Positions 13,896-64,000 of a stretch of 64,000 bases of DNA are shown in pieces. The position numbers and the translations under genes were made by a program. How positions within the stretch are numbered: the first letter of the stretch is position 1; each line of letters opens with the position of its first letter. Where the stretch lies: the NCBI RefSeq assembly GCF_902713615.1, contig NC_052158.1:30297990-30361989 (forward strand), written 5' to 3'. The notes under the pieces are model-generated. The model saw only the letters and a list, made by a program, of their open reading frames with translations. It did not search any database and had not been told where the DNA came from. This DNA is from Scyliorhinus canicula. Taxonomy: Eukaryota.

Positions 13896-14232
13896 GAATG
13901 GCTGCAGGAAACATCAGAATCACCCAATACCCATTCTGCATTTTTGTCAACCAGGGGCAGTCTACTGCTGAACTGCACGTATGAAAGGCCCTCGGGAATC
14001 GGCGTCTTCAAATGATACAAAGACACTAAAGACGGGCCGGAACTCAGCGAGCAATCTGTGGAATTCAGAGGGGGAGTGTCTCGAGCAAGTGCAGAGGTCT
14101 TTAAAGCCAAGAGGGAGGCTTCCATTACTATGACAGACTTGAGGCCTTACAATTCAGGGAGATATTACTGCCAAGTGAAATTAGTGGGACTTCAGGGAAC
14201 AGATGGACCAGGAACAGAACTAAATGTACTGC
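13896..14232 (+). pseudogene. NCR3: NKp30/NCR3-like VJ-type Ig V-domain exon, pseudogenised
   Basis: Phase-1 exon bounded by cag| and |GTGAGT. Reads GMAAGNIRITQYP...GQS/LLNCTYERPSGIGVFK*YKD...EFRGGV...REASITMTDLRPYNSGRYYCQVKLVGLQGTDGPGTELNVL. Frameshift near 13963; core Trp is TGA at 14013-14015. Confidence 0.85.
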
Positions 14233-14819
14233 GTGAGTTAACTGCTTAGCACAAGCTAAATGAATCACGGTAGCCATTGGGCCGGTCATTCCATTGCTCA
14301 ATACTAGTGAAATTAACACCTACATGTAAAGAAATATTAGCAGGGTATTGACATTCAAGATAATATTGTTTTTCTATGACAGGGTACATATTTATATCAT
14401 TTAACCGACTATGAACATTCAGAACACCTCCGTTCTGTTTAATAGTTGTCTATATTAAATAATAAAATATTTATTAAGCAATCATGAATATTTCTGCAAA
14501 CACACGGAATGTCCTGCCCCTTACTCTAAAACTATGCCCCCTTGTGATTGACCCATCAGTGTCCCAAACGCCCCAATTATTCCATAATGTGACCAGTGTT
14601 ACTCCGTAACTATTTTGTGCAGGAATGGTTAGGTTTTTATATTCACATTTTGTGAGCTTCCCTATGCTATTTGCTGATTGCGAACAGGAAACTACATTAA
14701 ATTTTACACTATATGTTTTAATATCCGGTATTTGCAGATGACCAGAAATTGAGTCAGTTGACTTAGGCAAATAGTACTGGAGAAGTGTAGTATGAGTATA
14801 AGAAGTATGAGCCAATCTC

Positions 14820-18335: not shown

Positions 18336-19659
18336 TCCAGTACTGTCCGTATGTTTTCCCACATAGCCCCCCCCCCCCCGATCCCCCACTTCGTTGCTTG
18401 TGCCTATCAGATCCTCAAGTACTGTGGTTTCTGGGGCCCAGTGTACCCTCCTGTCTATTTGCGGAGGAAGTGTTTTATTTGGAGGTGCCTCATTTCCTGC
18501 CCTTTTCCTAGCCTACACTTCCTAGTCAGTTCATCTAGTGTTGCCAGTCTCTGCCCTACGTAGAAGTCCCCAACCGTCAATGTGCCCCCGTCCCGCCTCC
18601 ATCTTTTGAAGGTGGTATCTAGCCTGGCTGGGGGGAATCTGTGATTGCGGCAGATGGGGCACATAACGGACATTTTGGTTATCCCGAAGAGCTGTGTCAA
18701 CTGTGTGTACATTCTCAGCGTGGCCGCTACCACTGGGCTCGTTGTGTACCTTGTTGAGGAGGGTGGGAGTGATGCTGTGGCCAGGGCCCATAGCATAGAG
18801 GAGCAGGTCATCTGCATAGACTGAGACTCTGTGCTCTCTGGCTCCTCTCCAATTCCCTTCCAGCTTTTCGCGTCCCACATTGCTATCGCCAGGGTTTTGA
18901 TCGCTAGTGCAAACAAAAGTAGGGACAGGGAGCAGCCCTGTCTTGTTCCTCTCCGCAGCTAGACCTAACTACCCCAACCCACTTACTCGTCTATTGCTAC
19001 CAAATTGTCCTATCTCCGAGTTCAGCATAAATTCCAAATCATTTTAGATATCTGGGCGTCGCTGGCTGGGCCAGCATTCCTTGCCCATCACGAATTGCTC
19101 ACCACCGCCTTCTCATGGCAGGTACCGACGTGCAACAATTGCTGGTAAGGCCAGCGACGCCCATATCCGGTAAAATTATTTTTTAAAAGATGTAAGTTGA
19201 TTGACGTCAAGTGCTCCTCATCTATTGAGTACTCGAAACACGCTTGTATTTTTTAATTTCAGATTTTCAGCATCCGTCGTGTTACCTTTCGCTTTTATTG
19301 GAATGTCGTAGCTCTTTGTCAATCCAAAGTATCCCTAATAATCCGGGATTCATGCTTGGGAAAGTTTACACAGCAGAGCCAGCGAGGAATTATAGTCCTC
19401 CAGGAAATTAATGATTTCCCAAAACGAAAATACAGCTCCACTCAAATATTCCAATGGCCTCTGTGTTCGTTAGGAAGCAGTTACGCCACTGCTGGTCTGG
19501 TACCAGATATGTTCAGGATATTTTAAACATTCTAGACAGGCGCATAACATCTTTGCACCTAAAACACTCAGAAACTAGCCAGTTTCGTACAAGACTCTTT
19601 CAAAAAGTTACTCAGTCTCCACGTAACTCATGAAATAATAAGGCCAGCATACTTACCTG

Positions 19660-24330: not shown

Positions 24331-24379
24331 ATGAACTTCCGTGTTTTCGGGACAATCTGGATAACGAACATGTTCGCCG
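24331..24379 (+). CDS. NCR3: leader exon [16 protein letters not shown]
   Basis: gacatcATG context, 16 codons + G, donor GTAAGA; G+CA gives Ala in frame with the V exon. Confidence 0.7.
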
Positions 24380-27300
24380 GTAAGAAACTATTTTACGCGA
24401 TGCCGGGTTCCAAACGAAAGCTTTTAAATGCATGCTCATATCATGATCACTGATCAATTTTTGTTTCATCAATCCCGCCCCCTCCCCCCGGAATCCAAAG
24501 CTATCCTTTGGGGGGAACTATTGGGGGGGGGGGGGGGGGAACTATTGCTAAACTATAGCCAACTATTGCTTCTAAAGTCATGAAAGCAGAACAAGCTTCA
24601 TCAATGGAAACAAGTGAAAATGACGTTTTGACGACAGCGAAGAATCATTGTTGGTTGAAAATTTTAACGATTGTTGTGATCTATACAGAGAACAACAGAG
24701 ATTAATATCGGTACCGCTCAAATTTCAAGTAAATTGTATGGGTGAGGATTCATGTCACAGAGTTTGTTCTTCGTGAGCTTGAGGATGATTTCACTGCTAC
24801 ACATTCCTTATCTCCCATGTGAAATTAGATCATTTAATATTTTCTATACACCACTAACTGAAAACACAGGCGATTTGCAATGTCACAAAAGTCTCATAGG
24901 GGCAGCAGGGTAGCATGGTGGTTAGCATAAATGCTTCACAGCTCCAGGGTCCCAGGTTCGATTCCCGGCTGGGTCACTGTCTGTGTGGAGTCTGCACGTC
25001 CTCCCCCTGTGTGCGTGGGTTTCCTTCGGGTGCTCCGGTTTCCTCCCACAGTCCAAAGATGTGCGGGTTAGGTGGATTGGCCATGCTAAATTGCCCGTAG
25101 TGTCCTAATAAAAGTAAGGTTAAGGGGGGGTTGTTGGGTTACGGGTATAGGGTGGATACGTGGGTTTGAATAGGGTGATCATGGCTCGGCACAACATTGA
25201 GGGCCGAAGGCCTGTTCTGTGCTGTACTGTTCTATGTTCTATAACCCCTACAGTGCAGAAGGAGGCCATTCGGCACATCGGGTCTCCACTGACCATCCGA
25301 AAGAGCCGCCTGCCCAGGCCCACGCCCTATCCCTGTCACCCCACCTGTCCTTTTGGGTACTAAGGGGAATTCAGCATGGCCAATCCACCTAAGCAATACA
25401 TTTTTAGACTGTGGGAGAAAATCGCAGCTCCCGGAGGAAAAACATGTAGACACGGGGAGAATGTGCGAACTCCTCACAGTCAGGCAAGGTTGGAATTGAA
25501 ACCGGGTCCCTGAAATGAAACGCATGCTTTTCTGAATATAAAGACACATTAACTTACTGATTCGAGCACCGTATCGTAGGTAATATATGACTGCTGTTAT
25601 ATTTCTTTCATAGAATTTACAATGCAGAAGAAGGCCATTCGGCCTATCGAGTCTACACCGACCCATGAAAGAGCACCCTATCTAAGCCCGCACCTCCACC
25701 CTATCCCCGCAATCCAGAATTCCACCTAACATTTGGACACAAGGGACAATGTAGCGTGACCAATACACCTAACTCGCAAATCTTTGGACTGTGAGAGGAA
25801 ACCGGAACACCGGGTGGAAACCCACGCACACACGGGGAGAACGTGCAGACTCCGCACAGGCAGTCACCCAAGCCGGGAATCGAATCTGTGTCCCTGGCGC
25901 TGTGAACCAACAGTGCTAACCGCTGTGCTACCCTGCCGCCCCAAATCCTGAATTGAATACAAAAGTTGTGTTTCAGTTATACTGAGCACTAGTGAGACGT
26001 CATCTGGAATATTGTGTACAGTGTTGGTGAACTTATTTAAGGGAGGATGTAAATGCTTTTCAAGCAGTTTAGAAAAGATTAACCTGGAATGGGCGGGTTG
26101 TCTGAAGAGGAAAGATTGGGCACGCGAAGCTTGTATCCATGGAGGTTAGTAGAGTAAGAAACGTAGACGATCACGATGAGTATTCGTTAGGCAGATGTGG
26201 AGACTTACTACTCTCATGGGAGAAAATAAACCCAGAATTCCTACAGTGCAGAGCGATGCCATTCGGCCCATTTCATCTGCACCGAGCCTCAGAAATTGCA
26301 TCCTTTCCACGCCCAATCACCCACCCTATCCCCGTAACCCGAGCTACGGGCAATTTAGCATTGCCAATCCACCTAATCTGCACATGTTTAGACTGTGGGA
26401 GGAAACCGGAGGACCGGGAGGAAACCCACGTAGACACAGGGAGAAACTGCAACCTCCATAATCACCTGCGTTTAGAATTGAAGTATTGCTCTGGCGCTGT
26501 GAGGCTGCAGTGCAAGGGGCTACTGTATAAAAGTAGAAAAATAAGCGTCTTCCACTTAAAATAGAGATCAGGCTAATTTAGTTCTCCAGTGTCACGAGTC
26601 TCTCTTACTCAAAAGCGAGACTTTGAATATTTTTAAGGCAAACGTGGACAGATTCCTGGTAACATAAGAACATAAGAACATAAGAACTAGGAGCAGGAGT
26701 AGGCCATCTGGCCCCTCGAGCCTGCTCCGCCATTCAATTAGATCATGGCTGATCGTTTGTGGACTCAGCTCCACTTCCCGGCCCGAACACCATAACCCTT
26801 AATCCCTTTATTCTTCAAAAAACGATCTATCTTTACCTTAAAAACATGTAATGAAGGAGCCTCAACTGCTTCACTGGGCAAGGAATTCCATAGATTCACA
26901 ACCCTTTGGGTGAAGTTCCTCCTAAACTCAGTCCTAAATCTACTTCCCCTTATTTTCAGGCTATGCCCCCTAGTTCTGCTGTCACCCGCCAGTGGAAACA
27001 ACCTGCCCGCATCTATCCTATCTATTCCCTTCATAATTTTAAATGTTTCTATAAGATCCCCCCCTCATCCTTCTAAATTCCAACGAGTACAGTCCCAGTC
27101 TACTCAACCTCTCCTCATAATCCAACCCCTTCAGCTCTGGGATTAACCTAGTGAATCTCCTCTGCACACCCTCCAGCGCCAGTACGTCCTTTCTCAAGTA
27201 AGGAGACCAAAACTGAACACAATACTCCAGGTGTGGCCGCACTAACACCTTATACAATTGCAACATAACCTCCCTAGTCTTAAACTCCATCCCTCTAGCA

Positions 27301-30300
27301 ATGAAGGACAAAATTCCATTTGCCTTCTTAATCACCTGTTGCACTTGTAAACCAACCTTCTGTGACTCATGCACTAGCACACCCAAGTCTCTCTGAACAG
27401 CGGCATGCTTTAATATTTTATCGTTTAAATAATAATCCCGTTTGCTGTTATTCCTACCAAAATGGATAACCTCCCATTTGTCAACATTGTATTCCATCTG
27501 CCAGACCCGAGCCCATTCACTTAACCTATCCAAATCCCTCTGCAGACTTCCAGTATCCTCTGCACTTTTCGCTTTACCACTCATCTTAGTGTCATCTGCA
27601 AACTTGGACACATTGCCCTTGGTCCCCAACTCCAAACCATCAATGTAAATTATGAACAAATTGTAAGCAGAAGTTTGTCGGGGGAAAGTCGGCATGCAGA
27701 TTTGAGGGCATTATCAGATCAGCCATGATCTTATTAATTGTCAGGGCAGGCTCGAGGCATCGAATGGCAAACATTGTTCCTTGTTCACACAATCGTATCA
27801 AAATTGCCACTTTGAATTGAGCAGAACTATCATCCACTCAATCAGAATAACGATTTTAATATTAAATGGTGGAGGCCTCCTTGAAATGATGTAAGCGTTC
27901 TTGCAATGAAAGAAAAACCAATTCATCCTACTTTTAATCTTGTTAACTTAATCCATTCACAGCAATTATTTTTGGAAATATCACCGTCATTCAGAGCCCG
28001 CGATCCCTCACTAAAGCCTCGGGACAGACTGCAGACCTGGGCTGTACATATGAAGGTCCCACTTCTGTCGGTAGTTACAGATGGTACAGGGGCAGCAAGG
28101 AGAGGAATGATGTTTCCAACAGTACAGCGGAATTCTGGGGAAGAGTTTACGAGGCAACTCAGGAGGATTTCAGCAACAAGCGGGACGCATCAATTCGAAT
28201 CTTTGACCTGAAAGTGGAGGACACCGGCTTCTATCTTTGCAAAGTGGAGCTGCTGGGAATCGGTGCAGCCTATGGAGCAAGGACCACCGTGACCGTGAAC
28301 CGTGACGAAGGGGGTAAGTGTGAGATAGCAAAGTTATTCTTTTGAATCTAGGGCACCCAAAAATGGCTTTTTGTTTCCAGTGACAATCATCATCAGATAG
28401 GCTAATTATTTATGAGACCAACTGAAACTTCAAACTGCGACCCCGCCTCTTTGAAGAAAAGGCAGCAGCTGTACTGGGCACACTATCAAGTGCCCATCCA
28501 ATTCATAGATCATACTGACTTGAAGTATATAGTACATCCTTTCACTGGGTCAAAATTATTTAACATTCTCGCTAACAGCTCTGGGGGTATGAAACATACA
28601 GCAGGTAAGGCGGCAGCGGTTCAGGAAGGCAGACACCACTACCTCATGATGGGAATCTTGGCACAGGCAATTAATTCCAGCTTTGCTAATAGCGACTGTT
28701 TCCTGGACACCAGGTTATAGAAAGGATGTATTTTCAATAGAGAGGAAATGTCGATGAGGTGGTTGAGAAGGTATATGAGATGCTTGGTTTTATTATCCGA
28801 GGCATAGAATACAGAGCAGCGAGGTCACACTGGAACTGTTTAAATTCTGGTGAGGTCACAGTTGGAGTGTATGTGCAGTTCTGGGCATTATAGTAAATAT
28901 GTGATTGCACTGGAGAGGTTGCAGAGGTGATTTCCAGGATGTTACCTTGGATGGAGGGCCTGAGCTATGAGGAAATATTGACTGGACTAGAGATAGTCTG
29001 ACAGGGACCTGTAGAGATATATAGGATAATGAGGGATATAGACACGGAGGCAATTTTTCCATTGTTAGAGGGATCAATAACCGGGGGAGGGGGTATAGAC
29101 TTTCTAGGTATAGATGGGGGTATAGACTGAAGGTAAAAGGTAGAAGATGAAGAACGGAATGGAATTGAAACATTTTCACTCAGAGGGTGGTTGGAGTTTG
29201 GAACTCACTGTCTGAGAGGGTGGTGAAGTCAACAGCTCTCGTATCATTTGAGAAGTCTTTACGTATTCACTTGTAACTACCAGAATCTCATTGAATCAAA
29301 GAATTTAAAGTGCAGAAGGAGGTCATTCGGCCCATCGAGTCTGCACTGGCCCTGGGAGACAGCACCCGACTTAAGCCTACGACTTCACTCTATCCCCGTC
29401 ACCCAGTAACCCACCGAACATTTTGGACACTGCGGGGCGATTTAGTACAGCCAGTCCACCTAATCTCTACATCTATGGACTGCGGGAGGAAACTGGAACG
29501 CTGATGAAGACACGGGGAGGAAGTTCAAACTTCACGTCGAGTCACCCGAGGCCGAAATTCAACCTGGGTCCCTGGCGGAGCTAGGCAGCAGTGCCACTGT
29601 GTCTCCCAAAACATTAGAGTGCCCAATTCGTCTTTTTCCCAATGAAGGAGAAATTTAGTGGCCAATTCACCTACTCTGCACATAGAACATAGAACATAGA
29701 ACATAGAACAGTACAGCACAGAACAGGCCCTTCGGCCCTCGATGTTGTGCCGAGCAATGTTCACCCTACTTAAACCCACGTAACCCGTATACCCGTAACC
29801 CAACAATCCCCCCATTAACCTTACACTACGGGCAATTTAGCATGGCCAATCCACCTAACCCGCACATCTTTGGGTTGTGGGGATGACAACCACGCAAACA
29901 CGGGAAAAATGTGCACACTCCATACCGACAGTTACCTGGGGCCAGGATTGAACCCGGGTGGCCAATTCACCAATTCTGCACATCTTTGGGTTGTGGGGAT
30001 GACAACCACGCAAACACGGGAAAATGTGTACACTCCATACCGACAGTGACCTGGGGCCAGGATTGAACCCGGGTCCTCTGCGCCATGTGGCACCTATCCA
30101 GTGCTGTGGGCCAAGTGCTGGGTAATGCTATTCGTGTGCTCAGATATTTTTTGACTAGCGTAAGCAGGATGGGCCGAATCACCCCCTTTTGTGCTGTGAA
30201 CGACTAGGAATCTATGAATCAAGATGTTCGTTAACTTCGGTCGTAGATAATTTTCGGTAAAACTTCAGTAAAGCCTGCACCATTATTGTGTGCGCGAATA

Positions 30301-33300
30301 TGATTGAGAGAAATAGGGGCACATGATGTGTCTTTTGGGGTGCCTATTTTGAATATGCAATTTAAAACGTTCGTGGTCATTTAGATCTCGCTGCCAGCGG
30401 GCAAATAGAATTAGAGACAGTAACAGTTCCACGTGTGAATATGAGCGAATAGATTTTTCTCCAATAAAATGATCTCCCGCCGGAAGAACCACATTGACTG
30501 GTCTAGGCAAGTCAAATATTTGAACTTTCTTTCAATCTTTGACATCCCATAATTATCAGGAGCGACATTTATTTTGTTTACGCTTGCGGATCTCCAATAT
30601 GCAGTGAATTCAGGAAACCCCGGCGGGAGGGTTGATACCCCTAAGGTAGCACAGCAAATTGCTCCGCCGAAGCCCCACTCCCTCTCAACCGACAATCCTG
30701 ATGAAAAGAAAGAAGCAACAAAGTGTTCAACATACTTATATTAAAACTCACACCGCGTGAAGTAAGGAATGGGAATCTCCCCTGTTGACAGCAAGGTCAC
30801 TTTGCCATTTAACTGGTGACTCTGTACAAACGTAATGAAGAAACTTCACATCACAGTTATTATGGGTACCACACTTCATGAATGATGTGAAGGATTTAGG
30901 TAGGGCGCAACAAAAATGAATGGTTGTCTTCTTCAGTTACATGGGTAGACTGGATAAACTGAGATGGTTCTCCCTAGACAATAGAACGATGAGAGCAGAT
31001 TTATACAAGCTTTCAAAATACGGGTGATTAGACAAGGTAGATAGAGAGAAACTGTTTCAATTGTCAGAGGTGTGGAGTTGCCTGTGTTGGACTGGGTGGG
31101 CACAGAAATAAGTCTCACAACACCAGGTTAAAGTCCAACAGGTTTGTTTTGAATCACTAGCTTTCGGAGCACAGCTCTTTCCTCACCTGGTGTTGCAAGA
31201 CGTCTTACAATTCTCAGAAGGTTGGAGAACAATATGACACCTGAGGATATAGGAACATAAGATATTTGGCAGGATTAGTCGATTCGCTCCCTCGATCCTT
31301 TTCTGCATTGGATAGGATAATATCTGGTCTGATGTGACATTTACTCCAATTTTCTATCTTCCCCCATAGCCCTTAACTCGTTGTCAATCACAAATTTGTC
31401 TAACTCAACCTTGAATAAATTCAATGACCAAGCTTGCATTGCTTTAAAAACATTCCTGGGGGCTGTGGGTGTCACTGGATGGGCGAATATTTGCCCATCC
31501 CAGTTGCCTTTCAACTGAATAGTTCTATTCAGAAGGCATTTAAGAGTCAGCCACATTGCTGTGGATCGGGAGCCACTTGTAGCCAGACCGGGTAAGGATG
31601 GTTGATGTCCGTGCCTAAAGGACATTCGTGATCCAGAGGATTGGGGGTTCCAAATACTAATGACCCTCTGAGTAAATACATCCTCCTCAACATAAGTCTT
31701 GAATGCTTGTTCCCTTATTTATAAACTGTGCCTCCCCACCCCCAGTTCTAGTTTCCTCCATAAGGAGAAACATACGAAAATACGAAGAAACGACAATACG
31801 TACAGATGAATTTTGTGTAGGTGTAGGCCACTTGGCCCCTTGAGCCTGCAACCCCATTCAATAAGATCATGGCGGATCTAATTGTAATTGAAACCTTAAC
31901 GCATGTTCCTGTCTACCCCGATAACCTCGTTAATCAGGATTCTATCTAGCTATGCCCTAAAATATTCAAAGATTCTGCTTCCACCGCCTTTAGACGGTGA
32001 GTTCCAGAAACTCACAACACTGCGAAAAATGTATCCTCATCTCCGTCTGAAATGTGTGACCCATTAATTTTAATCAGTTACTCCAAGCTCTAGATTTCCG
32101 ACAAGAGGAAACATTCGCTCCACACCCACCCCTCTGGATCGATTAAATCGCCTCTTACTCTTCTAAAGTCTAGTGGATACAAATGTAACCTCGCCAAACT
32201 TTCCTCATCAGCCAACCCGTATATTCCGGCTATTATCCCAGTAAACCTTCTCTGAACTGTTTGCAGCATATTTGCATAATTCCTTACCTAAGGAAATGAA
32301 TCTTATATACAATACTGTCGATGTGGTTTCACCAGTATCCTGTGCAACTAAAGCATAACCAAGCAGTAATCAATTCCCCTCATAATAAATTCTGACATTC
32401 TAACCCTAATTAACTTTCCTAATCACTTGGTGTGCCTGTATAGTCGTCTTTTGTGATTAATGCACGAGGACACATATGTTCGTCTTTTCATCAGGGCTGT
32501 GCAATCTCTCACCGTTTAGATACTAGCTTTATTTATATTCTTCCTTCTGGAATGGAAATTACACATTTTCCCACGTTATATTCTATTTGTCAGAGTGTTG
32601 ACAAGTCACGTAACTATCTTTGCCACTTTGGCACTTTCTCACAACCTCTTCGTAATTTGCTTTCTTACGTATGTTTGTGCTGTCAAAAAAATTAGTAACC
32701 CTACCTTCAGAGCTTTATCCAAAACATGTACACAAATTGTAAAATGTTGAGGCCCCAGCACCACATCCTTCCAATATAAAAAGACCCATCTGTGGCAACG
32801 TTATGCTTTCTGTTCGCTGGTAGATGTTTTATCCATACCAGTATACTAGGGGCTGGTTTAGCTCACTCAGCTAAATCGCTGGCTTTTAAAGCAGACCAAG
32901 CAGGCCAGCAGCACGGTTCCCGTACCAGCTTCCCCGGACAGGCGCCGGAATGTGGCGACTAGGGGCTTTTCACAGTAACTTCATTGAAGCCTACTCGTGA
33001 CAATAAGCGATTTTCATTTCATTTCATGTCACCGTACATCATGAGTTTTTACTTTATTCAATAACCTTTGATGTGGCATCTTATCAAATATCTAATCAAA
33101 AATCCTCGCATACTCTACACTGTCAAGTACCTCAATATCCGAGATGTTTCATTTGTCGGAACGAGCATAGGCCCAGCCTGCACAGTCTTTCGTCAGATGA
33201 CAACCAATTTAAGGCAACAGCATAATACTGGATATAATGCTGGATATCTGAAAGAAAAGCAGAAAATCCTGGAAAGACTGAACAGGTTTGGCAGAATCTG

Positions 33301-36300
33301 TGGAGAGTATAAGGTCAGTTATAGTTGTGAGCAAGGAGACATTGCAACAAAGATGAGCAGGGCACGAGACAGATTATGCGTTATTGGTTGTGTCAATATT
33401 TATAGAGCGTGCTGATAGTGACACATAGGTAATATAGCAGAATATGTTCACGGGAAAAGTAAAACTCAGTGAAAGCAAAATTTAAGGACAAGCGAAATGT
33501 GGCCCTGTGGGGAGCAGGTTTGGCGTTCGAACGATAAATGTTTTGGCTAAAAAAGGGAAGGGAAATGTCACAGTGCAAAATTATTGAAGTCAATGTTGAG
33601 TCCTGAAACTGTCACGAGGAAAATAACGGGTGGCACTGACTGAGAAAGTGGTGGAGGCAGATTCAATGGTTGCTTTCAGAAAGGAATTGATAGTGATCCG
33701 AATGAAAATATATCACAGACTGCGTGGAAATGGCAGGGACTGTGACGAGCTGAAACATATTTGCAGAGAGCTAGCACAGATGCGACAGATAGTATTTCTT
33801 TCTGTACTGTAATAATTCTACGATTCTACTTTGATCGGCAAATTGAATATTATTGTGTAATGCAAGGGAAACTGAATATTAAAGTGGTGATGATTCGCTC
33901 CGGTTGTACTAGGGGTCACTGCGGCAATATCTGGTGTATTGTACTGGTTTGGTCTCCATATTTGGCAAAATCTATCTCTCCATTAGAATCGGGTCAGAGA
34001 ATTCTCAGTCCATTCATTTCTGAGGTTATCTCTGATGAGCAGGATTATACAGGTTGGCATGTACCTAGTGAAATTTAGAATAATGATGGGTTTTCTCCCT
34101 CTCCCCCCCCCCCCCAACCCACAGATGTGCAGGTGGTGGGTGGATTTGCCACGCTAAAGTGCTTCGTAATTAAGAAGAATATTAACAAGAATTTTTCTAA
34201 TTGAAACGTATAAGATAATGAGGTGATTTGACAGGCTGGAATCTGAAACGTTGTTACCCCTTGTGGGGGAGAATGAAAATAGGGACAAATGGGCAGCACG
34301 GTAGCAGTGGGCGGCACGGTAGCATAGTCATTAGCACAGTTGCTTCGGAGTGCCAGGGTCCTAGGTTCGATTCCCGGCTTGGGTCACTGTCTGAGCACAG
34401 TCTGTATGTTCTCCCCGTGTCTGCGTGGGTTAGGTGAATTGGATAATCTGAATTCTTCCTCTGTGTGTGGCGTCTCAGTGTGGCGACTCCAAGCTTTTCA
34501 CAGTAACTTAATTGCAGCGTTAATGTTAGCCTACTTGTGACAATAAAAATTATTATAACGTTTAAAAATATGGGATTTTCCATTTAAGATGGACTTGAGG
34601 ATAGATGACAAATGAAATGAATCAAATGAAAATCACTTATTGTCACAAGTAGGCTTCAAATAAAGTTACTGTGAAAAGCCCCTAGTCGCCACATTCCGAC
34701 GCCTGTTCGGGGAGGCTGGTACGGGAATTGAACCGTGCTGCTCGCCTGCCTTGGTCTGCTTTCAAAGCCAGCTCTTTAGCCCTGTGCTAAACCAGCCCCA
34801 TGAAACCAGACACATTTTGTCTTTATTGTGTCAGCTGTTGCTTAGAATAATTTATTAGAATAATTACTACAGCACATATGAATTAGCTGAGTTTAAGAGA
34901 GGGAGAGAATTGCATCAAGATGAAGAAACGTGGCAAAGCGCCAAGAAACTAGTCGCTCTATTTGAGTATCATTGACAACAAAGTGGTAGGTGGCAGCGAT
35001 GGGATAGATTTTCGAGCGTTTGATGTCTTGTGAACGCGGGTGTGAAACAGACGCTTATCAACAGGCTGAGCGAACTGCTCCGCTAGATGACCACCTGGGC
35101 GCCGAGAATATATATTCCAAAAGGTGCATTAGCCACGTGCGTTACACATTGCCTTGAACCAGTAAAACGTACGGAGATTTTAAGAACTGTTCTATCTCCA
35201 TAGATGGCGGGGCAGAACATATCCAAGCAGAGAACTTCTTCAACGATGTCAAGATCATGTGGTGCGTTCGTGCAGTGATCATAAGTTTGCTGGGAGTTAT
35301 TGGAACGGCCTCCGCTGTCTGCCTCCGCCAGAAGAGGTAAGGGTACCAACATCTATCTATGTAATATGTAGATAAGCCCTTTATCTTAGATGAGCTGGCA
35401 AGGTACACAAGGCTGCAGACCAAGTTGGAAACTGGGGTTAAAATTGTTTCTTTTTTTAGACGATGGGCCGAAAGGCCTTTTCTGCGCTGGATATCTCTAT
35501 GACTCTGTGCCGCTATGACTGTTTGGGACACATGTACCTCAGCATGTATAATTACTTAGTGCAACCCTTGCGTACTGCTCCCATGAACAGAGAGTGTTAG
35601 ATGTGTATTAGAGTGCCATATTATAATTTCAGCTGTAAACATTCATGATGAAGATGTCGGTGTGAGGCGGGTTGGTGCGTTCAAGCCAAGTCCTGCTCCG
35701 AAATGGTCTTAGTCTTGGTCTGGTCGCCCCAACACTTCATTGTTAGGAGTTGGCCATACCATAACTACCCCCGCCGCCCTCCCCCCAACTGTCCCGCTCG
35801 GCTCCCCGCAACTTTAATTTATTCTAAACGTGAAATGCGACAACCTGCTCACAAGACATCAGCTTCAGTGCTAAGCTGTCCAGGGAAAGCAAACGGTATT
35901 AATTCCAAAGTGTCCAGTATTTATATTTTCAAAAATGAAAGCTGCGAACCTGACACGAGTTTGATCATTTTCTGGACACTTTGAAATTTCGTGAGCTCCA
36001 TAGTTCGATTCTGACGGATTTATCTGACCATTTGAAAGGAAATTCTAAACACAATGTTTCGACTACACGAAAAGCCATGTTAATATTCACCAACTCATAG
36101 CGTCATAGAGATTTACAGCACAGAAAAGGCCCCTCGACCCATCGTGTCTGCGCTGGTCAAATCCAACCACGTAACTATTCTAATCCCATTTCCAGCACTT
36201 GGTCCATAGGCTCCTAAGCCTTGGCATTGCAGTTACACATTTAAATACTTCTGAAATGTTCGGGTGGGGGAGCCTCCAGCACCCTTTCAGGCATTGAGTT

Positions 36301-37535
36301 CCAGGCTCCCATCACCCTCTGCTTAAAAACATTATTCCTCACATCCCCTCTAAACCTCCTGCCCCTTAACTTAAATCTACGTTCCCTGATCATTGCCTCT
36401 CGACCAAGGGTAAAAAATCCTTCCTATCTACTCTATCCACGCCCCTCAAAATTTTACACATCTCAATCATGTTCCCCACCTCTTTGCCTCCTCTTCTCAA
36501 AGGAAAATAACCCCAGTTCATCCAATCCCTCCTCAGAGATAAAACGCTACAGCCCAGGCAACCTCCTGGTAATTCTCCTCTGCACCCTTTCCAATGCTTT
36601 CACATCCCTCCTGCAACGTGGATTCCAAAACTGCACATGATACTCTAGCTGTGGCCGAACCAATCTATTGCATAATCAACTTAAATTTTATTAGAACGCA
36701 TATCCAATACAGCACGGTACGTCACTGGTTAGCACTGCTGCTTCACAGCGCCAGGGTTTCAGGTTCGATTCCCGGCTTGGGTCACTGTCTGTGCGGAGTC
36801 TGCACCTTCTCCCCATGTCTGCGTGGTTTCCTCCGGGTGTTCCAGTTTCCTCCCCCAAGTACCGAAAGACGTGCTTGTTAGGTGAATTGGTCCGAACACG
36901 GGGCGAGATTTGGCGACCCGGGGATTTTCAATGTAAGGCTACTTGTGACAATTAGGACTTGCCGCAATTGAACGTATTGACGTAGAAATTGATTAAAACT
37001 ACAGCAGAGTTTGTGCTTGGTTTCAGGGGATTCCGGTTATTTCCTTCCAAAGCTCTGGCGAGAAATGTTCCTGTTTAAGTTCGTCTGCACTGTGAGACCT
37101 GCCGTTTAGAATTGGCTACTTTTACCGCCACGTGCATGGCTGATAACCTGACCGTCTTGCCTCAAAATGAAATGATGATGACCCTACAATAACCAGCTCT
37201 ATCACTGACTTACATTTGTGGTACAAATGAACGAATGACGTCCAATGTTATCTGAAAAATTATGTAAAATGATGCTTGGGTTTTTACATTGTCGTATATG
37301 TTGGATGAGAGATAACGTTTTCTCTTGAACTACTTTTTTACATCAATTCAAAATCAAGTGAGCGACTTTATAACATTGGAAATGTAGAGTAGCGCGACAC
37401 ACCCTGATACCACTAGCCCTGCACCCTGAGCAAAATTTACATCAGTGATGTTTGCTCCCCTGCAGAAAGAAGATTCTTTCCCGTCAGCAACAGCACCTAA
37501 ATCCATTAGTTCGCAATCTAGCTCCGAACAACTGA
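24331..37535 (+). CDS. NCR3: NKp30/NCR3-like receptor, 4 coding exons, 200 aa: join(24331-24379,27963-28313,35204-35336,37466-37535)
   Basis: All junctions GT-AG and phase-compatible (1,1,2); 603 nt with no internal stop. Signal peptide, VJ-type V domain resembling human NKp30 (IGSVTWFR/EFRGR/AELHIRD/IYVCRVEVLGLG), TM with Arg, short tail. Confidence 0.8.
24899..25242 (+). mobile_element. V-SINE, young full-length copy (intronic)
   Basis: Near-identical to 15064-15408. Confidence 0.9.
25243..26510 (-). mobile_element. three reverse V-SINE copies (about 25243-25510, 25608-25942, 26235-26510) with a CR1 relic between
   Basis: Repeated cagtgcagaaggaggccattcggcc...ggactgtgggaggaaaccgg motifs. 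Confidence 0.8.
26665..27660 (-). mobile_element. young 5'-truncated CR1 LINE
   Basis: Long open RT frames 27039-27695 and 26765-27034 ([26 protein letters not shown]) with (TTCTTAT)n tail. Confidence 0.92.
27963..28313 (+). CDS. NCR3: Ig V-domain exon (intact)
   Basis: cattcacag|CA...GGG G|GTAAGT, 351 nt. [44 protein letters not shown]...EFWGRV...[43 protein letters not shown] with canonical C-W-C and DTGxYxC. Confidence 0.92.
28710..29280 (+). mobile_element. old CR1 fragment
   Basis: Decayed [19 protein letters not shown]-type CR1 3' sequence. Confidence 0.7.
29303..30090 (-). mobile_element. nested and duplicated V-SINE cluster
   Basis: SINE at 29303-29600, young SINE 3' half at 29684-29862, near-identical 97-bp copies at 29862-29959 and 29978-30074. 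Confidence 0.8.
31113..31200. repeat. small inverted-repeat element, Penelope-type relic
   Basis: caacaccagg (31118) and cctggtgttg (31186) inverted ends; internal tcactagctttcggagc half-hammerhead sequence. Confidence 0.55.
31250..32800 (-). mobile_element. old CR1 fragments
   Basis: Decayed CR1 3' tails and RT-coding sequence. Confidence 0.65.
32849..33026 (+). mobile_element. short SINE with (TTTCA)n tail
   Basis: ggggctggtttagc...cggttcccgtacc...gattttcatttcatttca. Confidence 0.9.
34291..34557 (+). mobile_element. V-SINE with duplicated 5' head
   Basis: gggcagcacggtagcagt followed by gggcggcacggtagcatagt. Confidence 0.8.
34613..34799 (-). mobile_element. short SINE with (TTTCA)n tail
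   Basis: Same family as 32849-33026. Confidence 0.9.
35204..35336 (+). CDS. NCR3: stalk + transmembrane exon
   Basis: ctatctccatag|AT...AAG AG|[51 protein letters not shown]; hydrophobic helix with Arg near its outer end. Confidence 0.82.
36100..36952. mobile_element. CR1 3' relic (-) followed by V-SINE (+, 36710-36952)
   Basis: CR1 tail and SINE head/core motifs. Confidence 0.75.
37466..37535 (+). CDS. NCR3: cytoplasmic tail exon [22 protein letters not shown]
   Basis: gctcccctgcag acceptor, phase-2 compatible, stop at 37533-37535, AATAAA at 37749; alternative tail exons not excluded. Confidence 0.55.
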
Positions 37536-37748
37536 AATCTGTTCTCCTTAGACAGGAAAAGTTAGGATCTGTAATATTCTCGTTCTCCCTCCCACACCTC
37601 AACCCCCCCCCCTCCCCCCCTCACAAGACATTGCCATTATTGGTTTTGTACTGGACATTCACGCATAAGGCAATATTCGACAGGCAATGTTTCCAGTTCG
37701 GGCCCATACATTAATTTCAAGAGTTTTTATATCTGGCGCACATTTTTT

Positions 37749-37754
37749 AATAAA
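37749..37754 (+). terminator. candidate polyadenylation signal
   Basis: AATAAA about 215 nt after the predicted stop. Confidence 0.4.
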
Positions 37755-39314
37755 TGTACGAAACAGATGATTTCTCCTGAAATTTTCATCAGTGATGGGA
37801 CCGTCACAGCCCTTCAACCGGTTAAAAGCCCATGCAGAAATCTCAATAATTCGATTAAAAACACATGTGTTTTGCACTTGATTGTGCTGTACCATGAAGG
37901 CGATTGCAAGCTGTCGCTTTCGGAATTTTAAACTTTCTTTTTGATTATTTCGGGAAATATGTATCCTAATCAAGGAGGAAATGGAAGTCTCCAACATTCA
38001 AGCCGCTTGAATCCCTTTCTTTCCCTCCAAACACTTCATCGAACCCTTGCCTCTGAGTATCCACCCTGCGATAACTCTGGGTTTCTGTTGCCTTGCGGCC
38101 TTTCAGCAGCACCACTTTTCGTTGCGCCCATGACATCCTCCCATGGGCTGCATACAACAATTGATTGCATGCATTTGTGGGAAGCGCGTTTCGTTTGATG
38201 GCGCCTGTGTTCCCCTTCAGAAGGCCCTGGACCTTCTTCTTGAACCACTGCAGTCAATATGGCGACGGCACTCCCAAAAATTCTCAAAATACGGAGTTCC
38301 TGGATTCGGAGTCACAATGAAGGAACGTCGACATGTGTCAAATTCGAGATGGTGAATGACTTGAAAGCGTCACTTGGAATTTGTGAGTCTCCCGTTTCCA
38401 AATTTCCATCAAATTTTAATTATGCCGTGCTGGATAAATTCAGGTTGACCTCAAACCATGTTTGGTTAACAGCAATTCTGTCAGCTGACTTTTAGCTAAT
38501 GCAGTGCTAGCTTAGTGTCAGAATGGAATACAATGCCTTAGATTACATAGGGCTGGTGTCCTTGTCAAAGACACACCATACACCTGACAATTATGAACAA
38601 GACGAGTGTTCTGCGTCTCTCCATACCCATCTGTTTTATTAGAATTATTGAAATAATAATCAGACAATATAATCATAAGAACATGGTGTTAGATTTTGGC
38701 ATAATCTACTATATTCTCCCTTCATCAGCATTCAGTTGGACATACATGCCAATTTCTAAAGTTAATTGTGAGTCAGGCCAATTCATGAAAAACAAAGCGA
38801 ATCACTCTGCAAGTAGTGGCAATAGAAAACATCTGTATGTCCAATTTCAAGGTAAAACATTCCTAATCAGTTCACACAGAAGTTTCCAGAGTACAGTTAA
38901 CCCGAACCGTAAAGGATGAAGTAAAAATGTGAGTTATGGAGGCAAGACATAGGTCAGGGATCACAAGAAACTAAGGTTATATTTACATTGTTTCTTTATT
39001 TCTGTTTACTTATTTCAAACCTCTCAGAAGTTAGAACAGATTTTAAAATCTTCACGTTTTCTATCGGAAAGTCAAGTGGCTGATTCACCAACAACCACAG
39101 GTTTCTGCTGCTAAACTGAATCCTATTATCACACAGGTTGCTCAGAGAAACATAGAAACTACATGCATTAAGAGTTCTGAGTTCTGAATATGAATTCACT
39201 TTTTTGACAGAGAGAAGATAACCATGGAGACGCAGAGAAATGGTAAGGATGGGGCCATGTAAAGAGTCAACGGAGAGAGAAGCCAGTCGTGTTAAAGTGC
39301 TTTCTGCACAGATC

Positions 39315-60598: not shown

Positions 60599-63500
60599 AC
60601 TTTAGAAATAAGATATCCGAATGAGTTGCGTATGGGCCGCGACGGGTAAGATTTGGATAGAATCCCCGGGTAGGGCGTGCTGTGCTGTACCCGAGCTTTG
60701 CTGACCAGAGGGGGGTCCTCAGACAGGGCGGGTCCTCAATGCCGTTTCTCCACTGCCTGAGCGACCTGGAATGAACGGGCATGAATGTGGTCATCGTGGA
60801 TTTGCAGCCTCTATTCCCAGAATAGAGGGGCTCCTTAAAAAAGGGGGAGCCAAGATGCTTCTAGTGGGGTGAAGGATGAAGACTTAAGTTGGGCTCCAGA
60901 CATTGCAGCTGAGTCAAGTTCTCAGAGATATCTGCGGACAAACTAACGTGCATGTGAGGTGGTCACAAACTTTTCAGCTGAAAATCGTGCGGCCAATCTC
61001 CAAAAACAAACATTAACAAACGAACAAACATCACCAAACATTCGTGCCGGTTCCATCAGAAAGGACACCGTTCATCTCTCAAGCGATGCCTCTTTTTACA
61101 TCATCTGGACACCTCAATTCTCTTCATCCTCTGCAAACACGGTCGCAAAGGGGTTGCCGTGTCGGGAGTCAGACCCAGAGTCATCCTCTTCTCCGGGATC
61201 CCATACCCGTGTATGGATCAGGCATGCAATCATAGCGTTATGTGACCGGGGGTCACTCTCGTCATTTCGGACAAGTCTCCAAGAATTGTCACTGTGCCAA
61301 AGTGTGGGGTCTAAATTTGTATGCGCGTTGTCGGGGTCGTCATACTGGAGCAGTGGGGCTGGGTGTAGGTCTGGTGTTTTAATGTAAGTGATTTCCAAAT
61401 CACTGTAGTCGGGGTCGTAGTTGGTGTGTGTGGGATCTGTTGTATCAGGGCAGTAGAGAGGCGTGCTGTGGCTGTCGTCAAAGTCACAGTCGCTGTCTCT
61501 GCTGTGGCAGCTTGTGGGTGTTTCGGGGCGTGGTCTGAAGTCAGGGGCGGAGTCGAGGTCGAGTCCGATGAGGTGCTGGTCTGTGAGGGGGAGAGTGGAA
61601 ATGTGTCTCTTGTGGGCGGGGCGTGGTGTTCTGCTGCGTCTAGCAGGACATGGTGTGAGTGGTTGGACTGTGTTCCATATGCCTTTAACTCGTTGATATG
61701 GAACCAGGCAGACTTCCCGTTGGGGTACTTTATCTTGTAAACTGAAGGGCTGATTTTGTCTGCAATTGAGTATGGGCCGGAAAATTTTGGGGCCAAAATC
61801 GTGCTGGGGTTATAAACAGATAACATGAGCTGTTGTCCAACCTGGAACTCTGTGGAATGTACTGTCCTGTCGAAATAAGCCTTGCTCTGTTACCTTTTCT
61901 TTCCCAATTTAACTGCGGCTGCTAACTGAGCCGACCTTACAGTTTCCACTAATTGCTTTACTACTGTCTCGTGTGTGAGGGCCGTCACTTATGGGCTGGT
62001 GATGTCGAGTCCTAAAAGGAATTCAGATCCTTTCATGGGGCGTCCGGACATGAGTGTGTGTGGGGTGAAACCTATTGATGCTGAAACAGTATTTCTTAAA
62101 AACATAAGTGCGAATGGGAGCACTAAATCCCAAGTGGTATTGTTTTCCTGGACCATCTTTCGAAGGGTCGATTTTAGAGTCCGATTCATGCATTCCACGA
62201 TACAACTGGACTGGGGGTGGTACGCAATGTGGAAATTTTGTTTAATGCCGAATATGGTCAGGACGTTTTTCATGACCGATTCTGTAAAATGAGATCCCTG
62301 GTCCGACTCAATACTTCTGGGGAGTCCCCATCTAGTAAAGATGTGGTGGGTCAGGATATTTGCGGTCGTTTTTGCTGTGTTTGTTTGAGATGGGAATGCC
62401 TCTACCCATTTCGTGAACGTGTCTATGACCACCAGTACGTATTTATAGCTATTCCTGCAAGGGGGCAATGGACTTATAAAATCGATCTGGAGGTTTGTCG
62501 AGGGGCCATTAACGGGGCGAGTGTGGCTGAGTTGTGCCTCCTTAGAATACCTCTCCGGGTTATTCTGTGTACAAATCAAACAGTTCTCTATGTAGTGCGT
62601 TACATTGTCTCTTAAATTGGGCCACCAACAGAGCTGCCTCAGGTGGGCTGTGGTAGGGTCGATCCATGGATGTCCAAAACAATCATGGACAAGGCAATCA
62701 TTTGATTCCTGTCTTTCTCAGGAACCTCATACAACTTGTCTTTGATAACCACACCCTCGTGTATGGTCAGAGCGTGTTTAAACTTGCCGTAACGTGGCAA
62801 AAACTTTCCTCTACTAATCTCCCTGAGATTGCTGTCCTGTTTTTATGCCTGTACTAGGTCCTCAATGTCTGCCTGTGAGACCTGAACAGAACTCACAGGG
62901 GCGCTAGCTGGTGCACTAGCTGGGGGTGTCCAAAAATGTCCGTGCCTTGAACCTGCTTTTGCCAGGGGGGGGGGGGGGATGACCGATGGTGACTTCTACC
63001 TTTAATGATGCCATAAGTCCTCTCCTTTGCCTGTTCTAGGATTTGGCGGAGCAATTGGGCTGATGGAAGGGGCTTACCATCTGTGGAAACAAAACCTCTT
63101 GTCCTCCACATGGGTAGAAAATCTGTTAGGCTGTTACAGACATATAAGCTATCCGAATATATATCTGCTGGGCTGGGGAACGAAGCTGGGTGATCCACTA
63201 TGTATGCAATGGCCACGAGCTCTGCTGCCTGCGCGCCTAAGTGACCGGGTAACATTAATGCTATCTCCTCTAGTGCGTGTCCCTGTGCACCTTCCACATA
63301 AATTCCACATCCAGTAATGCGTTCGCCATCTAAAACAGTGGATGAACCATCCACATAAATCTTCAAAGGGGCACACATGTCTGCGTGCTGGGGGCTTTGA
63401 GTTGAACTTCCTATCTTCCTGGGGGGACGTTTTTGCAATGAAGGATCCTGTCTTGTGGAGGGGGGCTACTATTTCGCAATCATGGGGTTGTCCTGGGTAT

Positions 63501-64000
63501 TGGAGGTTGTCTGCTAAAAATGTGTGTGTCCTGGTCCGTTTAACTGTTATGTCCCGTCCCTGTAAAAGAAGTGTCCACTTAGCTGCTCTAATCTGGCTCA
63601 CTGAACCGTCCTTCTGTCGTCCGTCCAATAGAAGCTGTGTGGGGGTGTGTTCGGTCAAAATGGTGATGGGGTTGAGTCCGGTAATGTAAGAAACGTATTG
63701 TACTGCCCAGAATACAGCGAGTAGGTGCCTTTCGCAGGCTGAAAATCCTTGCTCTACTGGGTCTAACAGTCTGGAGGCATAAGCCACTGGTTGTAGCTGC
63801 TCGTGCCGTTCCTGAAGGAGCACGGCTGAGAGGGTCAGATCTGTGCTTGCTACCTCAATTGCATAGGGGGAGAGTGGGTCTGGAACTTGTAGTGCAGGTG
63901 CTGCGCTAAGGGCTTTCTTTAAATCTTCCACAGCCTCTGTATGCTGCGGAAGCGATTCCCAAGGGGCTCCTTTCTTAAGGAGGTCTGAAAGTGGTGCTGC

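Follow-up and report, generated by a model that had tools for sequence, protein, structure and literature searches.

Introduction

NKp30 (NCR3) is, to our knowledge, the one NK-cell receptor that can be traced from sharks to humans, and shark NKp30 was reportedly treated by Flajnik et al. in 2012. Its germline-joined V domain is used to model what the forerunner of the antibody and T-cell receptor V genes looked like. Human NKp30 carries one IgV domain and a membrane arginine that pairs with CD3-zeta/FcR-gamma (PMC6514059), and its isoforms vary in exon 4 (PMC12272517). In sharks, a diverse NCR3 family has been described and its linkage to the MHC published (PMC12227049; PMC10751288). It includes the nurse shark NCR3 genes MT914154-MT914161 (Kinlein et al., Immunogenetics 2021, as cited in PMC12227049). 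A further group of comparable systems comprises KIR, SIRP-alpha/beta and the paired Ig-like receptors, in which near-identical ectodomains are mounted either on a charged membrane span with a short tail or on an uncharged span with a tyrosine-motif tail.

Here we describe a gene found in 64 kb of catshark DNA. This whole stretch is referred to as the window, and all catshark positions are counted from its first letter. With a probability of about 75%, we consider the gene to be an intact member of the shark NCR3 (NKp30) family. Its product would be a type I membrane protein of 200 aa, in which a single V domain of the non-rearranging VJ type is joined to an arginine-bearing membrane span and to a tail of 26 aa that lacks signalling motifs. 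The gene would be the activating-type counterpart of inhibitory members of the family. Because a diverse, MHC-linked shark NCR3 family has already been published, the finding is less new than the first-pass annotation of this DNA had assumed. The gene is a further, apparently unannotated member of that family, i.e., one more activating-type copy that leaves the family picture unchanged.

The V domain encoded by a single non-rearranging exon, of VJ type, is a feature that the catshark gene has in common with the shark NCR3 genes, which form a divergent multigene family. The two differ towards the C-terminus, where the catshark gene has an arginine-bearing span and a 26-aa tail without tyrosine, whereas in the nearest named relatives examined the span is uncharged and the tail is longer, in many cases with tyrosine motifs. 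Compared with human and mammalian NKp30 (PDB 3NOI, 3PV6, 6YJP), the length of about 200 aa and the layout of leader, one V domain, stalk and membrane span, and short tail are alike. In both, the membrane arginine is followed by an alanine at the same depth, and an N-x-T site and the stretch C-x-V-E-x-L-G-x-G past the second cysteine are kept. In contrast, V-domain identity to human NKp30 is only about 30%, arginine takes the place of the second glycine in the J-like motif of the catshark gene, and the tails are unrelated. Furthermore, human NKp30 is a single gene, while the catshark gene is one of several in a family that also has inhibitory members.

Results and discussion

Exon structure and coding capacity

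Four exons on the + strand, joined in silico, give 603 nt that read as 200 aa and a stop codon. The features are as follows (a slash marks the exon border):

24331 to 24379, + strand: exon 1, 49 nt; ATG at 24331, the first 16 signal-peptide codons plus 1 nt; donor G/gtaaga at 24380
27963 to 28313, + strand: exon 2, 351 nt; end of the signal peptide and the whole V-set domain
35204 to 35336, + strand: exon 3, 133 nt; stalk, membrane span with Arg156, and start of the basic stop-transfer stretch
37466 to 37535, + strand: exon 4, 70 nt; last 22 residues of the tail and TGA stop; acceptor ..ctcccctgcag/
37749 to 37754, + strand: candidate polyadenylation signal AATAAA, 214 nt past the stop, recognized by motif only

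All three introns run from GT to AG, with the donors G/gtaaga, G/gtaagt and AG/gtaagg and with pyrimidine-rich acceptors ending in cag/ or tag/. The exon phases (1, 1 and 2) are compatible, all six predicted splice sites are strong, and the 603 nt contain no internal stops or frameshifts in any of the four exons. The first-pass annotation had proposed four phase-compatible exons encoding 200 aa, and the exon borders, the frame and every peptide string it quoted were reproduced. Its description of an intact NKp30/NCR3-like gene is borne out by the open frame, the strong splice sites and a V domain that matches NKp30. The arginine-containing membrane span and the short tyrosine-free tail that it reported are likewise present, in alignment with mammalian NKp30.

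Chance is ruled out as the origin of the V exon because it matches both Pfam V-set and human NKp30, and for exon 3 because a conserved counterpart exists in another shark. The same holds for exon 1 because its leader is similar to the one of P0007, an NCR3-family protein of bamboo shark (52% identity, E 0.003 within the hit set). Exon 4 is the least supported exon; it is predicted from the frame, the strong acceptor and the downstream AATAAA, and a homologue was not found in the 3.9 kb searched of the bamboo shark locus L001. However, if intron 3 were retained, translation would meet an immediate in-frame stop (AGG TAA), and the short-tail design is therefore independent of exon 4.

Predicted protein and signs of decay

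In the predicted protein, the signal peptide is followed by one V-set domain, a cysteine-free stalk of 17 aa (residues 134-150), a membrane span at approximately residues 151-174 with Arg156 near its outer end, and a 26-aa cytoplasmic tail containing neither tyrosine nor an ITIM or ITAM. Exon 2 encodes Cys44, Trp57 and Cys109 as well as two sites for N-glycosylation (N22 and N69), and its J-like strand reads YGARTTVTV. The V domain is complete within this exon, including the J-like G strand, and shows no break or recombination-signal-type interruption. The J-like motif reads G-A-R-T-T-V-T-V compared with G-x-G-T-x-L/V-x-V, and the other motif positions are kept. Of 20 family proteins aligned, at least 90% keep the second glycine of G-x-G-T, which is arginine here. 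This Gly-to-Arg change may weaken the fold or be a sign of early decay.

The gene could accordingly be viewed as a silent or recently disabled copy, a relic in a birth-and-death receptor cluster whose frame is still open while expression, fold or function has been lost. Besides the substitution at a nearly invariant position, such a view is favored by a paralogous V exon 14 kb upstream in the same window, which is dead; gene death therefore does happen in this cluster. It also fits that no protein with this V domain was found in the public protein collection by word-index search, and that none of the listed sequencing runs with exon words is recorded as RNA. However, a disabled copy would have had to keep 603 nt over four exons free of stops and frameshifts, together with six strong splice sites. 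The AlphaFold2 model of the V domain folds confidently (pLDDT 92), and dN/dS is well under 1 (V exon, 0.29; stalk/membrane exon, 0.45), though these values are averaged over a long history. In addition, a 177-million-letter run from the same species, whose RNA or DNA nature is unrecorded, contains 78% of the V-exon words and 21% of the words from 35204-37780. These shares hint at spliced RNA rather than DNA. Loss of function is unlikely, and the intact gene would presumably be expressed and be spliced in vivo as predicted.

The membrane exon and its bamboo shark counterpart

A counterpart of exon 3 is located at 19301-19436 of the bamboo shark locus L001 (E 9e-9). It is open, keeps the arginine, the phases and the GAG/gtaagg donor, and lies 5.9 kb behind a related V exon, compared with a V-to-membrane-exon distance of 6.9 kb in the catshark gene. 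Arg156 and the end of exon 3 also align with the membrane arginine and span of four mammalian NCR3 proteins.

These observations bear on whether the V exon might be real and the gene model wrong, such that the V exon joins other exons (e.g., for an uncharged span and an ITIM tail) and the arginine and tail exons are alternative or belong to another transcript. The closest V domains, those of P0001 (first half), P0005 and P0006, are indeed found in proteins with uncharged membrane spans and tyrosine-motif tails, and the junction between exons 2 and 3 is a prediction from the in-silico join. Yet the exon phases fit this join only, and the bamboo shark V exon has the same arginine membrane exon behind it, at a similar distance and in the same phase. 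Moreover, a search of the 64-kb window for exons of the ITIM-tail or uncharged-span kind, using the tails of P0001, P0004, P0005, P0006 and P0038 as queries, returned nothing below E 0.2. Other partner exons for this V domain are therefore very unlikely.

With the four exons joined as listed, the two halves of the protein show different relationships. The identity of the V domain follows lineage, being 80% to the catshark inhibitory type (first V domain of the paralogue P0001) and 61% to the bamboo shark activating type. The identity of the membrane exon follows type instead, with 52% to the activating type of bamboo shark, which is of another shark order, and 12-27% to the inhibitory types. 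As judged from sequence, a receptor family with paired activating and inhibitory members shows this pattern. It resembles the arrangement in KIR, SIRP-alpha/beta and the paired Ig-like receptors, but the Ig domain family differs and the pairing in the shark is a reading of sequence.

A broader proposal, which we regard as tentative and give somewhat less than even odds, is that NKp30 in sharks works as a paired system of activating and inhibitory receptors that is of ancient origin. The signalling halves (arginine span with short tail, and uncharged span with tyrosine-motif tail) would have split before the catshark-type and bamboo-shark-type lineages diverged. Gene conversion, or exon exchange that happened repeatedly, would have preserved the likeness of the ligand-binding V exons inside each lineage. 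An inhibitory gene nearby would then have the catshark gene as its unannotated activating partner. If this is true, NKp30 began as a balanced pair sensing self and pathogen decoys and not as a lone activating receptor. A full-text literature search, whose reach did not extend to the primary shark NCR3 papers, found no account of charged-span versus ITIM shark NKp30. The catshark gene and the bamboo shark locus together provide a pattern open to testing: lineage governs the V domain, and type the membrane exon.

Affiliation of the V domain

The V domain of exon 2 matches Pfam V-set at 8.8e-14. Its best sequence match in the PDB is human NKp30 (3NOI; 2.4e-12, 50.6 bits), compared with 41.9 bits for SIRP-alpha. 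When a shark-only V profile was used against the PDB, NKp30 reached 80.6 bits (8e-22) and a single-domain SIRP 64.8 bits. An exhaustive protein search gave shark NCR3-family proteins as the top matches, including nurse shark NCR3 QTT61898.1, to which the V domain is 65% identical, and the same search recovered mammalian NCR3 orthologues.

In a tree of the search matches, the V domain falls in a starred seven-row clade with NCR3-like proteins of nurse shark, bamboo shark and horn shark, and tetrapod NKp30 forms a clade apart from those of the sharks, with no sister relationship recovered between them. The tree has no named outgroups; CD28, TMIGD2 and TCR/Ig are absent from it, and the PDB ranking was used in their place. 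The earlier proposal that the V domain groups with NKp30 and not with another IgSF family agrees with the top PDB matches by both sequence and fold, and with the clade shared with the curated nurse shark NCR3. The suggestion that the gene might be unannotated also fits our results, since a word-index search of the public protein collection did not find a protein with the exon 2 V domain. Word-index searches with the relatives P0004 and P0001 gave only relatives already known.

It is highly improbable that the gene is SIRP-like, CD28/CTLA-4-like or TMIGD2-like, from another IgSF family with a single V domain, and has no more than a generic likeness to NKp30. In favor of this view, several shark relatives are automatically annotated as 'signal-regulatory protein beta-like', the PDB matches that follow NKp30 in rank are SIRP-alpha and shark VNAR, and the tree lacks named outgroups. 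Against it, the lead of NKp30 over SIRP is 9 bits when the single sequence is used and 16 bits when the profile is built from sharks only, and NKp30 takes the first four places among the Foldseek matches in the PDB (TM 0.79-0.84). A tblastn search with 150 relatives found V exons alone in the window and no C1-type domain exons as in SIRP. The stalk without cysteine and the tail without tyrosine argue against CD28/CTLA-4/TMIGD2, and the top PDB matches include no chain of the CD28 family. The membrane arginine aligns with that of NKp30, and the clade of the protein includes the curated nurse shark NCR3. As for genomic context, the 64-kb window contains no MHC genes.

Proposed function and relevance

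As an activating NKp30-type receptor, the protein would bind a cell-surface ligand through its V domain, and B7H6-like molecules are the obvious candidate. Through its membrane arginine it would pair with the aspartate in an adaptor that bears an ITAM and is of the CD3-zeta/FcR-gamma type; in NK-like cells or T cells, this adaptor would then signal activation. The inhibitory-type counterparts combine an uncharged span with a tyrosine-motif tail, and one of them, from catshark, has a V domain 80% identical to that of the gene described here. A shark catalogue that splits activating-type from inhibitory-type copies is needed to find the NK-like cells of sharks and to test co-evolution with B7H6. 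With respect to the ligand, several positions around the C' strand and the F-G stretch, which we take to be involved in binding, are common to the catshark V domain and human NKp30.

Gene structure and encoded protein

The first-pass annotation had proposed four exons coding for a 200-aa protein, and its coordinates and all the peptide strings it quoted were recovered when the exons were joined in silico. The features of the gene, counted along the window, are as follows.

Features of the NKp30/NCR3-like gene
24331-24379, + strand: exon 1, 49 nt, read directly
27963-28313, + strand: exon 2 (V exon), 351 nt, read directly
35204-35336, + strand: exon 3 (stalk/membrane), 133 nt, read directly
37466-37535, + strand: exon 4 (tail), 70 nt, read directly
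214 nt 3' of the stop codon: AATAAA, motif match

Direct reading of the window shows that all three introns start with GT and end with AG, with the donors G/gtaaga, G/gtaagt and AG/gtaagg in order and acceptors rich in pyrimidines. The sequence holds no N and is unmasked throughout, and scripted splicing of exons 1-4 gives 603 nt, i.e., 200 aa and a TGA stop. On the DNA evidence the gene is real and intact, with predicted splicing.

The protein starts with a hydrophobic leader (predicted cleavage around residue 21), followed by a V domain (landmarks Cys44, Trp57 and Cys109), a cysteine-free stalk of 17 aa, and a hydrophobic span, about residues 151-174, in which Arg156 lies. N-x-S/T sites are found at N22 and N69. 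The tail is 26 aa, basic and devoid of tyrosine, and therefore carries no ITIM, ITSM, ITAM or YxxM.

Family of the V domain

The V exon matches Pfam V-set (8.8e-14), and its best four matches among all PDB sequences are human NKp30 (3NOI, 3PV6, 6YJP and 9FWW; 2.4e-12, 50.6 bits), followed by SIRP-alpha (41.9 bits) and shark VNAR. A profile built from shark relatives only scored NKp30 at 80.6 bits versus 64.8 bits for the best single-domain SIRP. The AlphaFold2 model of the V exon (pLDDT 92, alignment of 20 sequences) again placed NKp30 in the top four positions of a Foldseek search against the PDB (TM 0.79-0.84), with SIRP-alpha and VNAR next; the input alignment included mammalian NCR3, which may slightly bias this fold match toward NKp30.

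HMMER, run exhaustively against 1.84 billion representatives, returned 365 matches. The best named ones include small-spotted catshark XP_038671257 (P0001), nurse shark NCR3 QTT61898.1 (P0004, 65%), two bamboo shark proteins named "NCR3" in UniRef (P0005 and P0007) and horn shark "NCR3-like" isoforms (P0006). True mammalian NCR3 (naked mole-rat, donkey, possum, meerkat) and a newt "NK p30-related protein" rank lower. A maximum-likelihood tree was built from 98 V domains among these matches. In it, the window V domain is sister to the first V domain of P0001 (80% identity, support 96), and both fall in a supported seven-row clade that also holds proteins of nurse shark, bamboo shark and horn shark. 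Since the tree contains no named outgroup, it places the V domain in the shark family but does not establish one-to-one orthology with human NCR3. The NKp30/NCR3-like identity proposed earlier is thus borne out by the PDB ranking, the shark-only profile, Foldseek and the tree, and the gene belongs to the published shark NCR3/NKp30 family. Passages in PMC12227049 and PMC10751288, citing Kinlein 2021 and Flajnik 2012, describe shark NCR3 as MHC-linked.

Word-index searches (64-203, 117-373 and 258-820 aa) found no public protein with the window V domain and none flagged as window-encoded. Within the limits of the index, this fits the suggestion that the gene is unannotated. The gene is a new member, apparently without annotation, of a known shark family.

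Leader, membrane and tail exons

The leader is 52% identical to that of bamboo shark P0007 over 25 aa. Searching the P0007 locus (L001, BEZZ01001198.1) with the window protein revealed an open 136-nt exon at L001:19301-19436, 5.9 kb 3' of the bamboo shark V exon. It shares with window exon 3 identical acceptor and donor phases and an identical GAG/gtaagg donor, and its span is 52-57% identical to the window span, including W-C-V-R-A with the arginine. At the DNA level the stalk/membrane exon alone aligns between window and L001, and the surrounding matches are dispersed repeats. Between the two species' copies, the V exon has a dN/dS of 0.29 and the stalk/membrane exon one of 0.45; dS is close to 1. 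The public P0007 model (GCC38509.1, 166 aa) is truncated: it runs past the V-exon donor into a stop and so misses the Arg-bearing membrane exon.

Arg156 aligns with the membrane arginine of mammalian NCR3 (W-C-V-R-A versus L-L-L-R-A), and the end of exon 3 coincides in the alignment with the end of the mammalian span. No counterpart of exon 4 was found in the 3.9 kb of L001 available for the search, and this exon is the weakest part of the gene model. Retention of intron 3 gives an instant stop (AGG TAA) in window and bamboo shark alike, and the design of a charged span with a very short tail is therefore independent of exon 4.

Activating and inhibitory types

In human NKp30, a single IgV domain is combined with a membrane arginine, which pairs with an aspartate of CD3-zeta or FcR-gamma (PMC6514059); the human isoforms differ in exon 4 (PMC12272517). 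The window protein shares this design, and its arginine lies at equal depth. Most likely, its V domain would therefore bind a ligand and an activating signal would pass through an ITAM adaptor. Of the activating receptor proposed by the first-pass annotation, the type stands, as the predicted Arg156 span and tyrosine-free tail are activating by design. Counted against full function are the G-A-R-T of the J-like motif, in place of the G-x-G-T found in at least 90% of 20 aligned relatives, and a dead paralogous V exon upstream (about 13899-14237).

The relatives with the closest V domains (the first half of P0001, P0005 and P0006) have uncharged spans and V/I-x-Y-x-x-L/V/I-type tail motifs and are, judged by these sequences, inhibitory-type receptors. 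No uncharged-span or tyrosine-motif tail exon was found in the 64-kb window when searched with the relatives' sequences. The window V domain shares 80% identity with the catshark inhibitory type versus 61% with the bamboo shark Arg-span gene; between the V domains of the two bamboo shark genes, identity is 74%. The window membrane exon, however, shows 52% identity with the bamboo shark Arg exon versus 12-27% with uncharged spans. Hence V identity tracks lineage, while membrane-exon identity tracks type. This pattern fits an old split between activating and inhibitory genes, combined with homogenisation or exchange of V exons inside each lineage, as is known from other paired receptor families.

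The RefSeq model P0001 (XP_038671257.1, 469 aa) runs from a V domain through an uncharged span and a tyrosine-motif tail to a second V domain and an Arg-bearing span, and looks like two adjacent family genes merged into one. The nurse shark P0004 (QTT61898.1) tail has 28 aa with Y-A-D-M, which is YxxM-type as in CD28/DAP10, and no ITIM; the shark NCR3 family may include a third signalling type.

Expression and neighbouring elements

The sequencing run X1 (177 million letters, same species, library kind not on record) contains 78% of sampled V-exon words and just 21% of the words of 35204-37780, of which exons make up about 15%. Whole-genome runs 10x larger contain 28-47% of that stretch. The exon-weighted content of X1 suits a spliced transcript, which is only a hint.

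Other elements in the window
about 13899-14237, + strand: second NKp30-family V exon, dead, 14 kb upstream
27039-27695, - strand: weak reverse-transcriptase fragment inside intron 1, transposon remains
about 36092-36890: repeat in intron 3, with several copies in bamboo shark locus L001
45031-45621, + strand: clearer RVT_1 ORF downstream of the gene, transposon remains
61311-63931, - strand: retroelement with integrase, RNase H and RT-RNase H domains, at the window end

The dead V exon shares 60-70% identity with the second V domain of P0001 and keeps a canonical G-P-G-T J motif. It has a frame shift ahead of the first cysteine and a TGA at the invariant Trp codon, and no leader or membrane exon that would go with it was found in the vicinity.

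In the bichir Polypterus senegalus, a two-V relative (P0017/P0163) falls in the same 90% cluster as a 596-aa model titled "PRC2A protein, partial". In the human MHC class III region, PRRC2A lies close to NCR3, and the bichir clustering may reflect conserved synteny.
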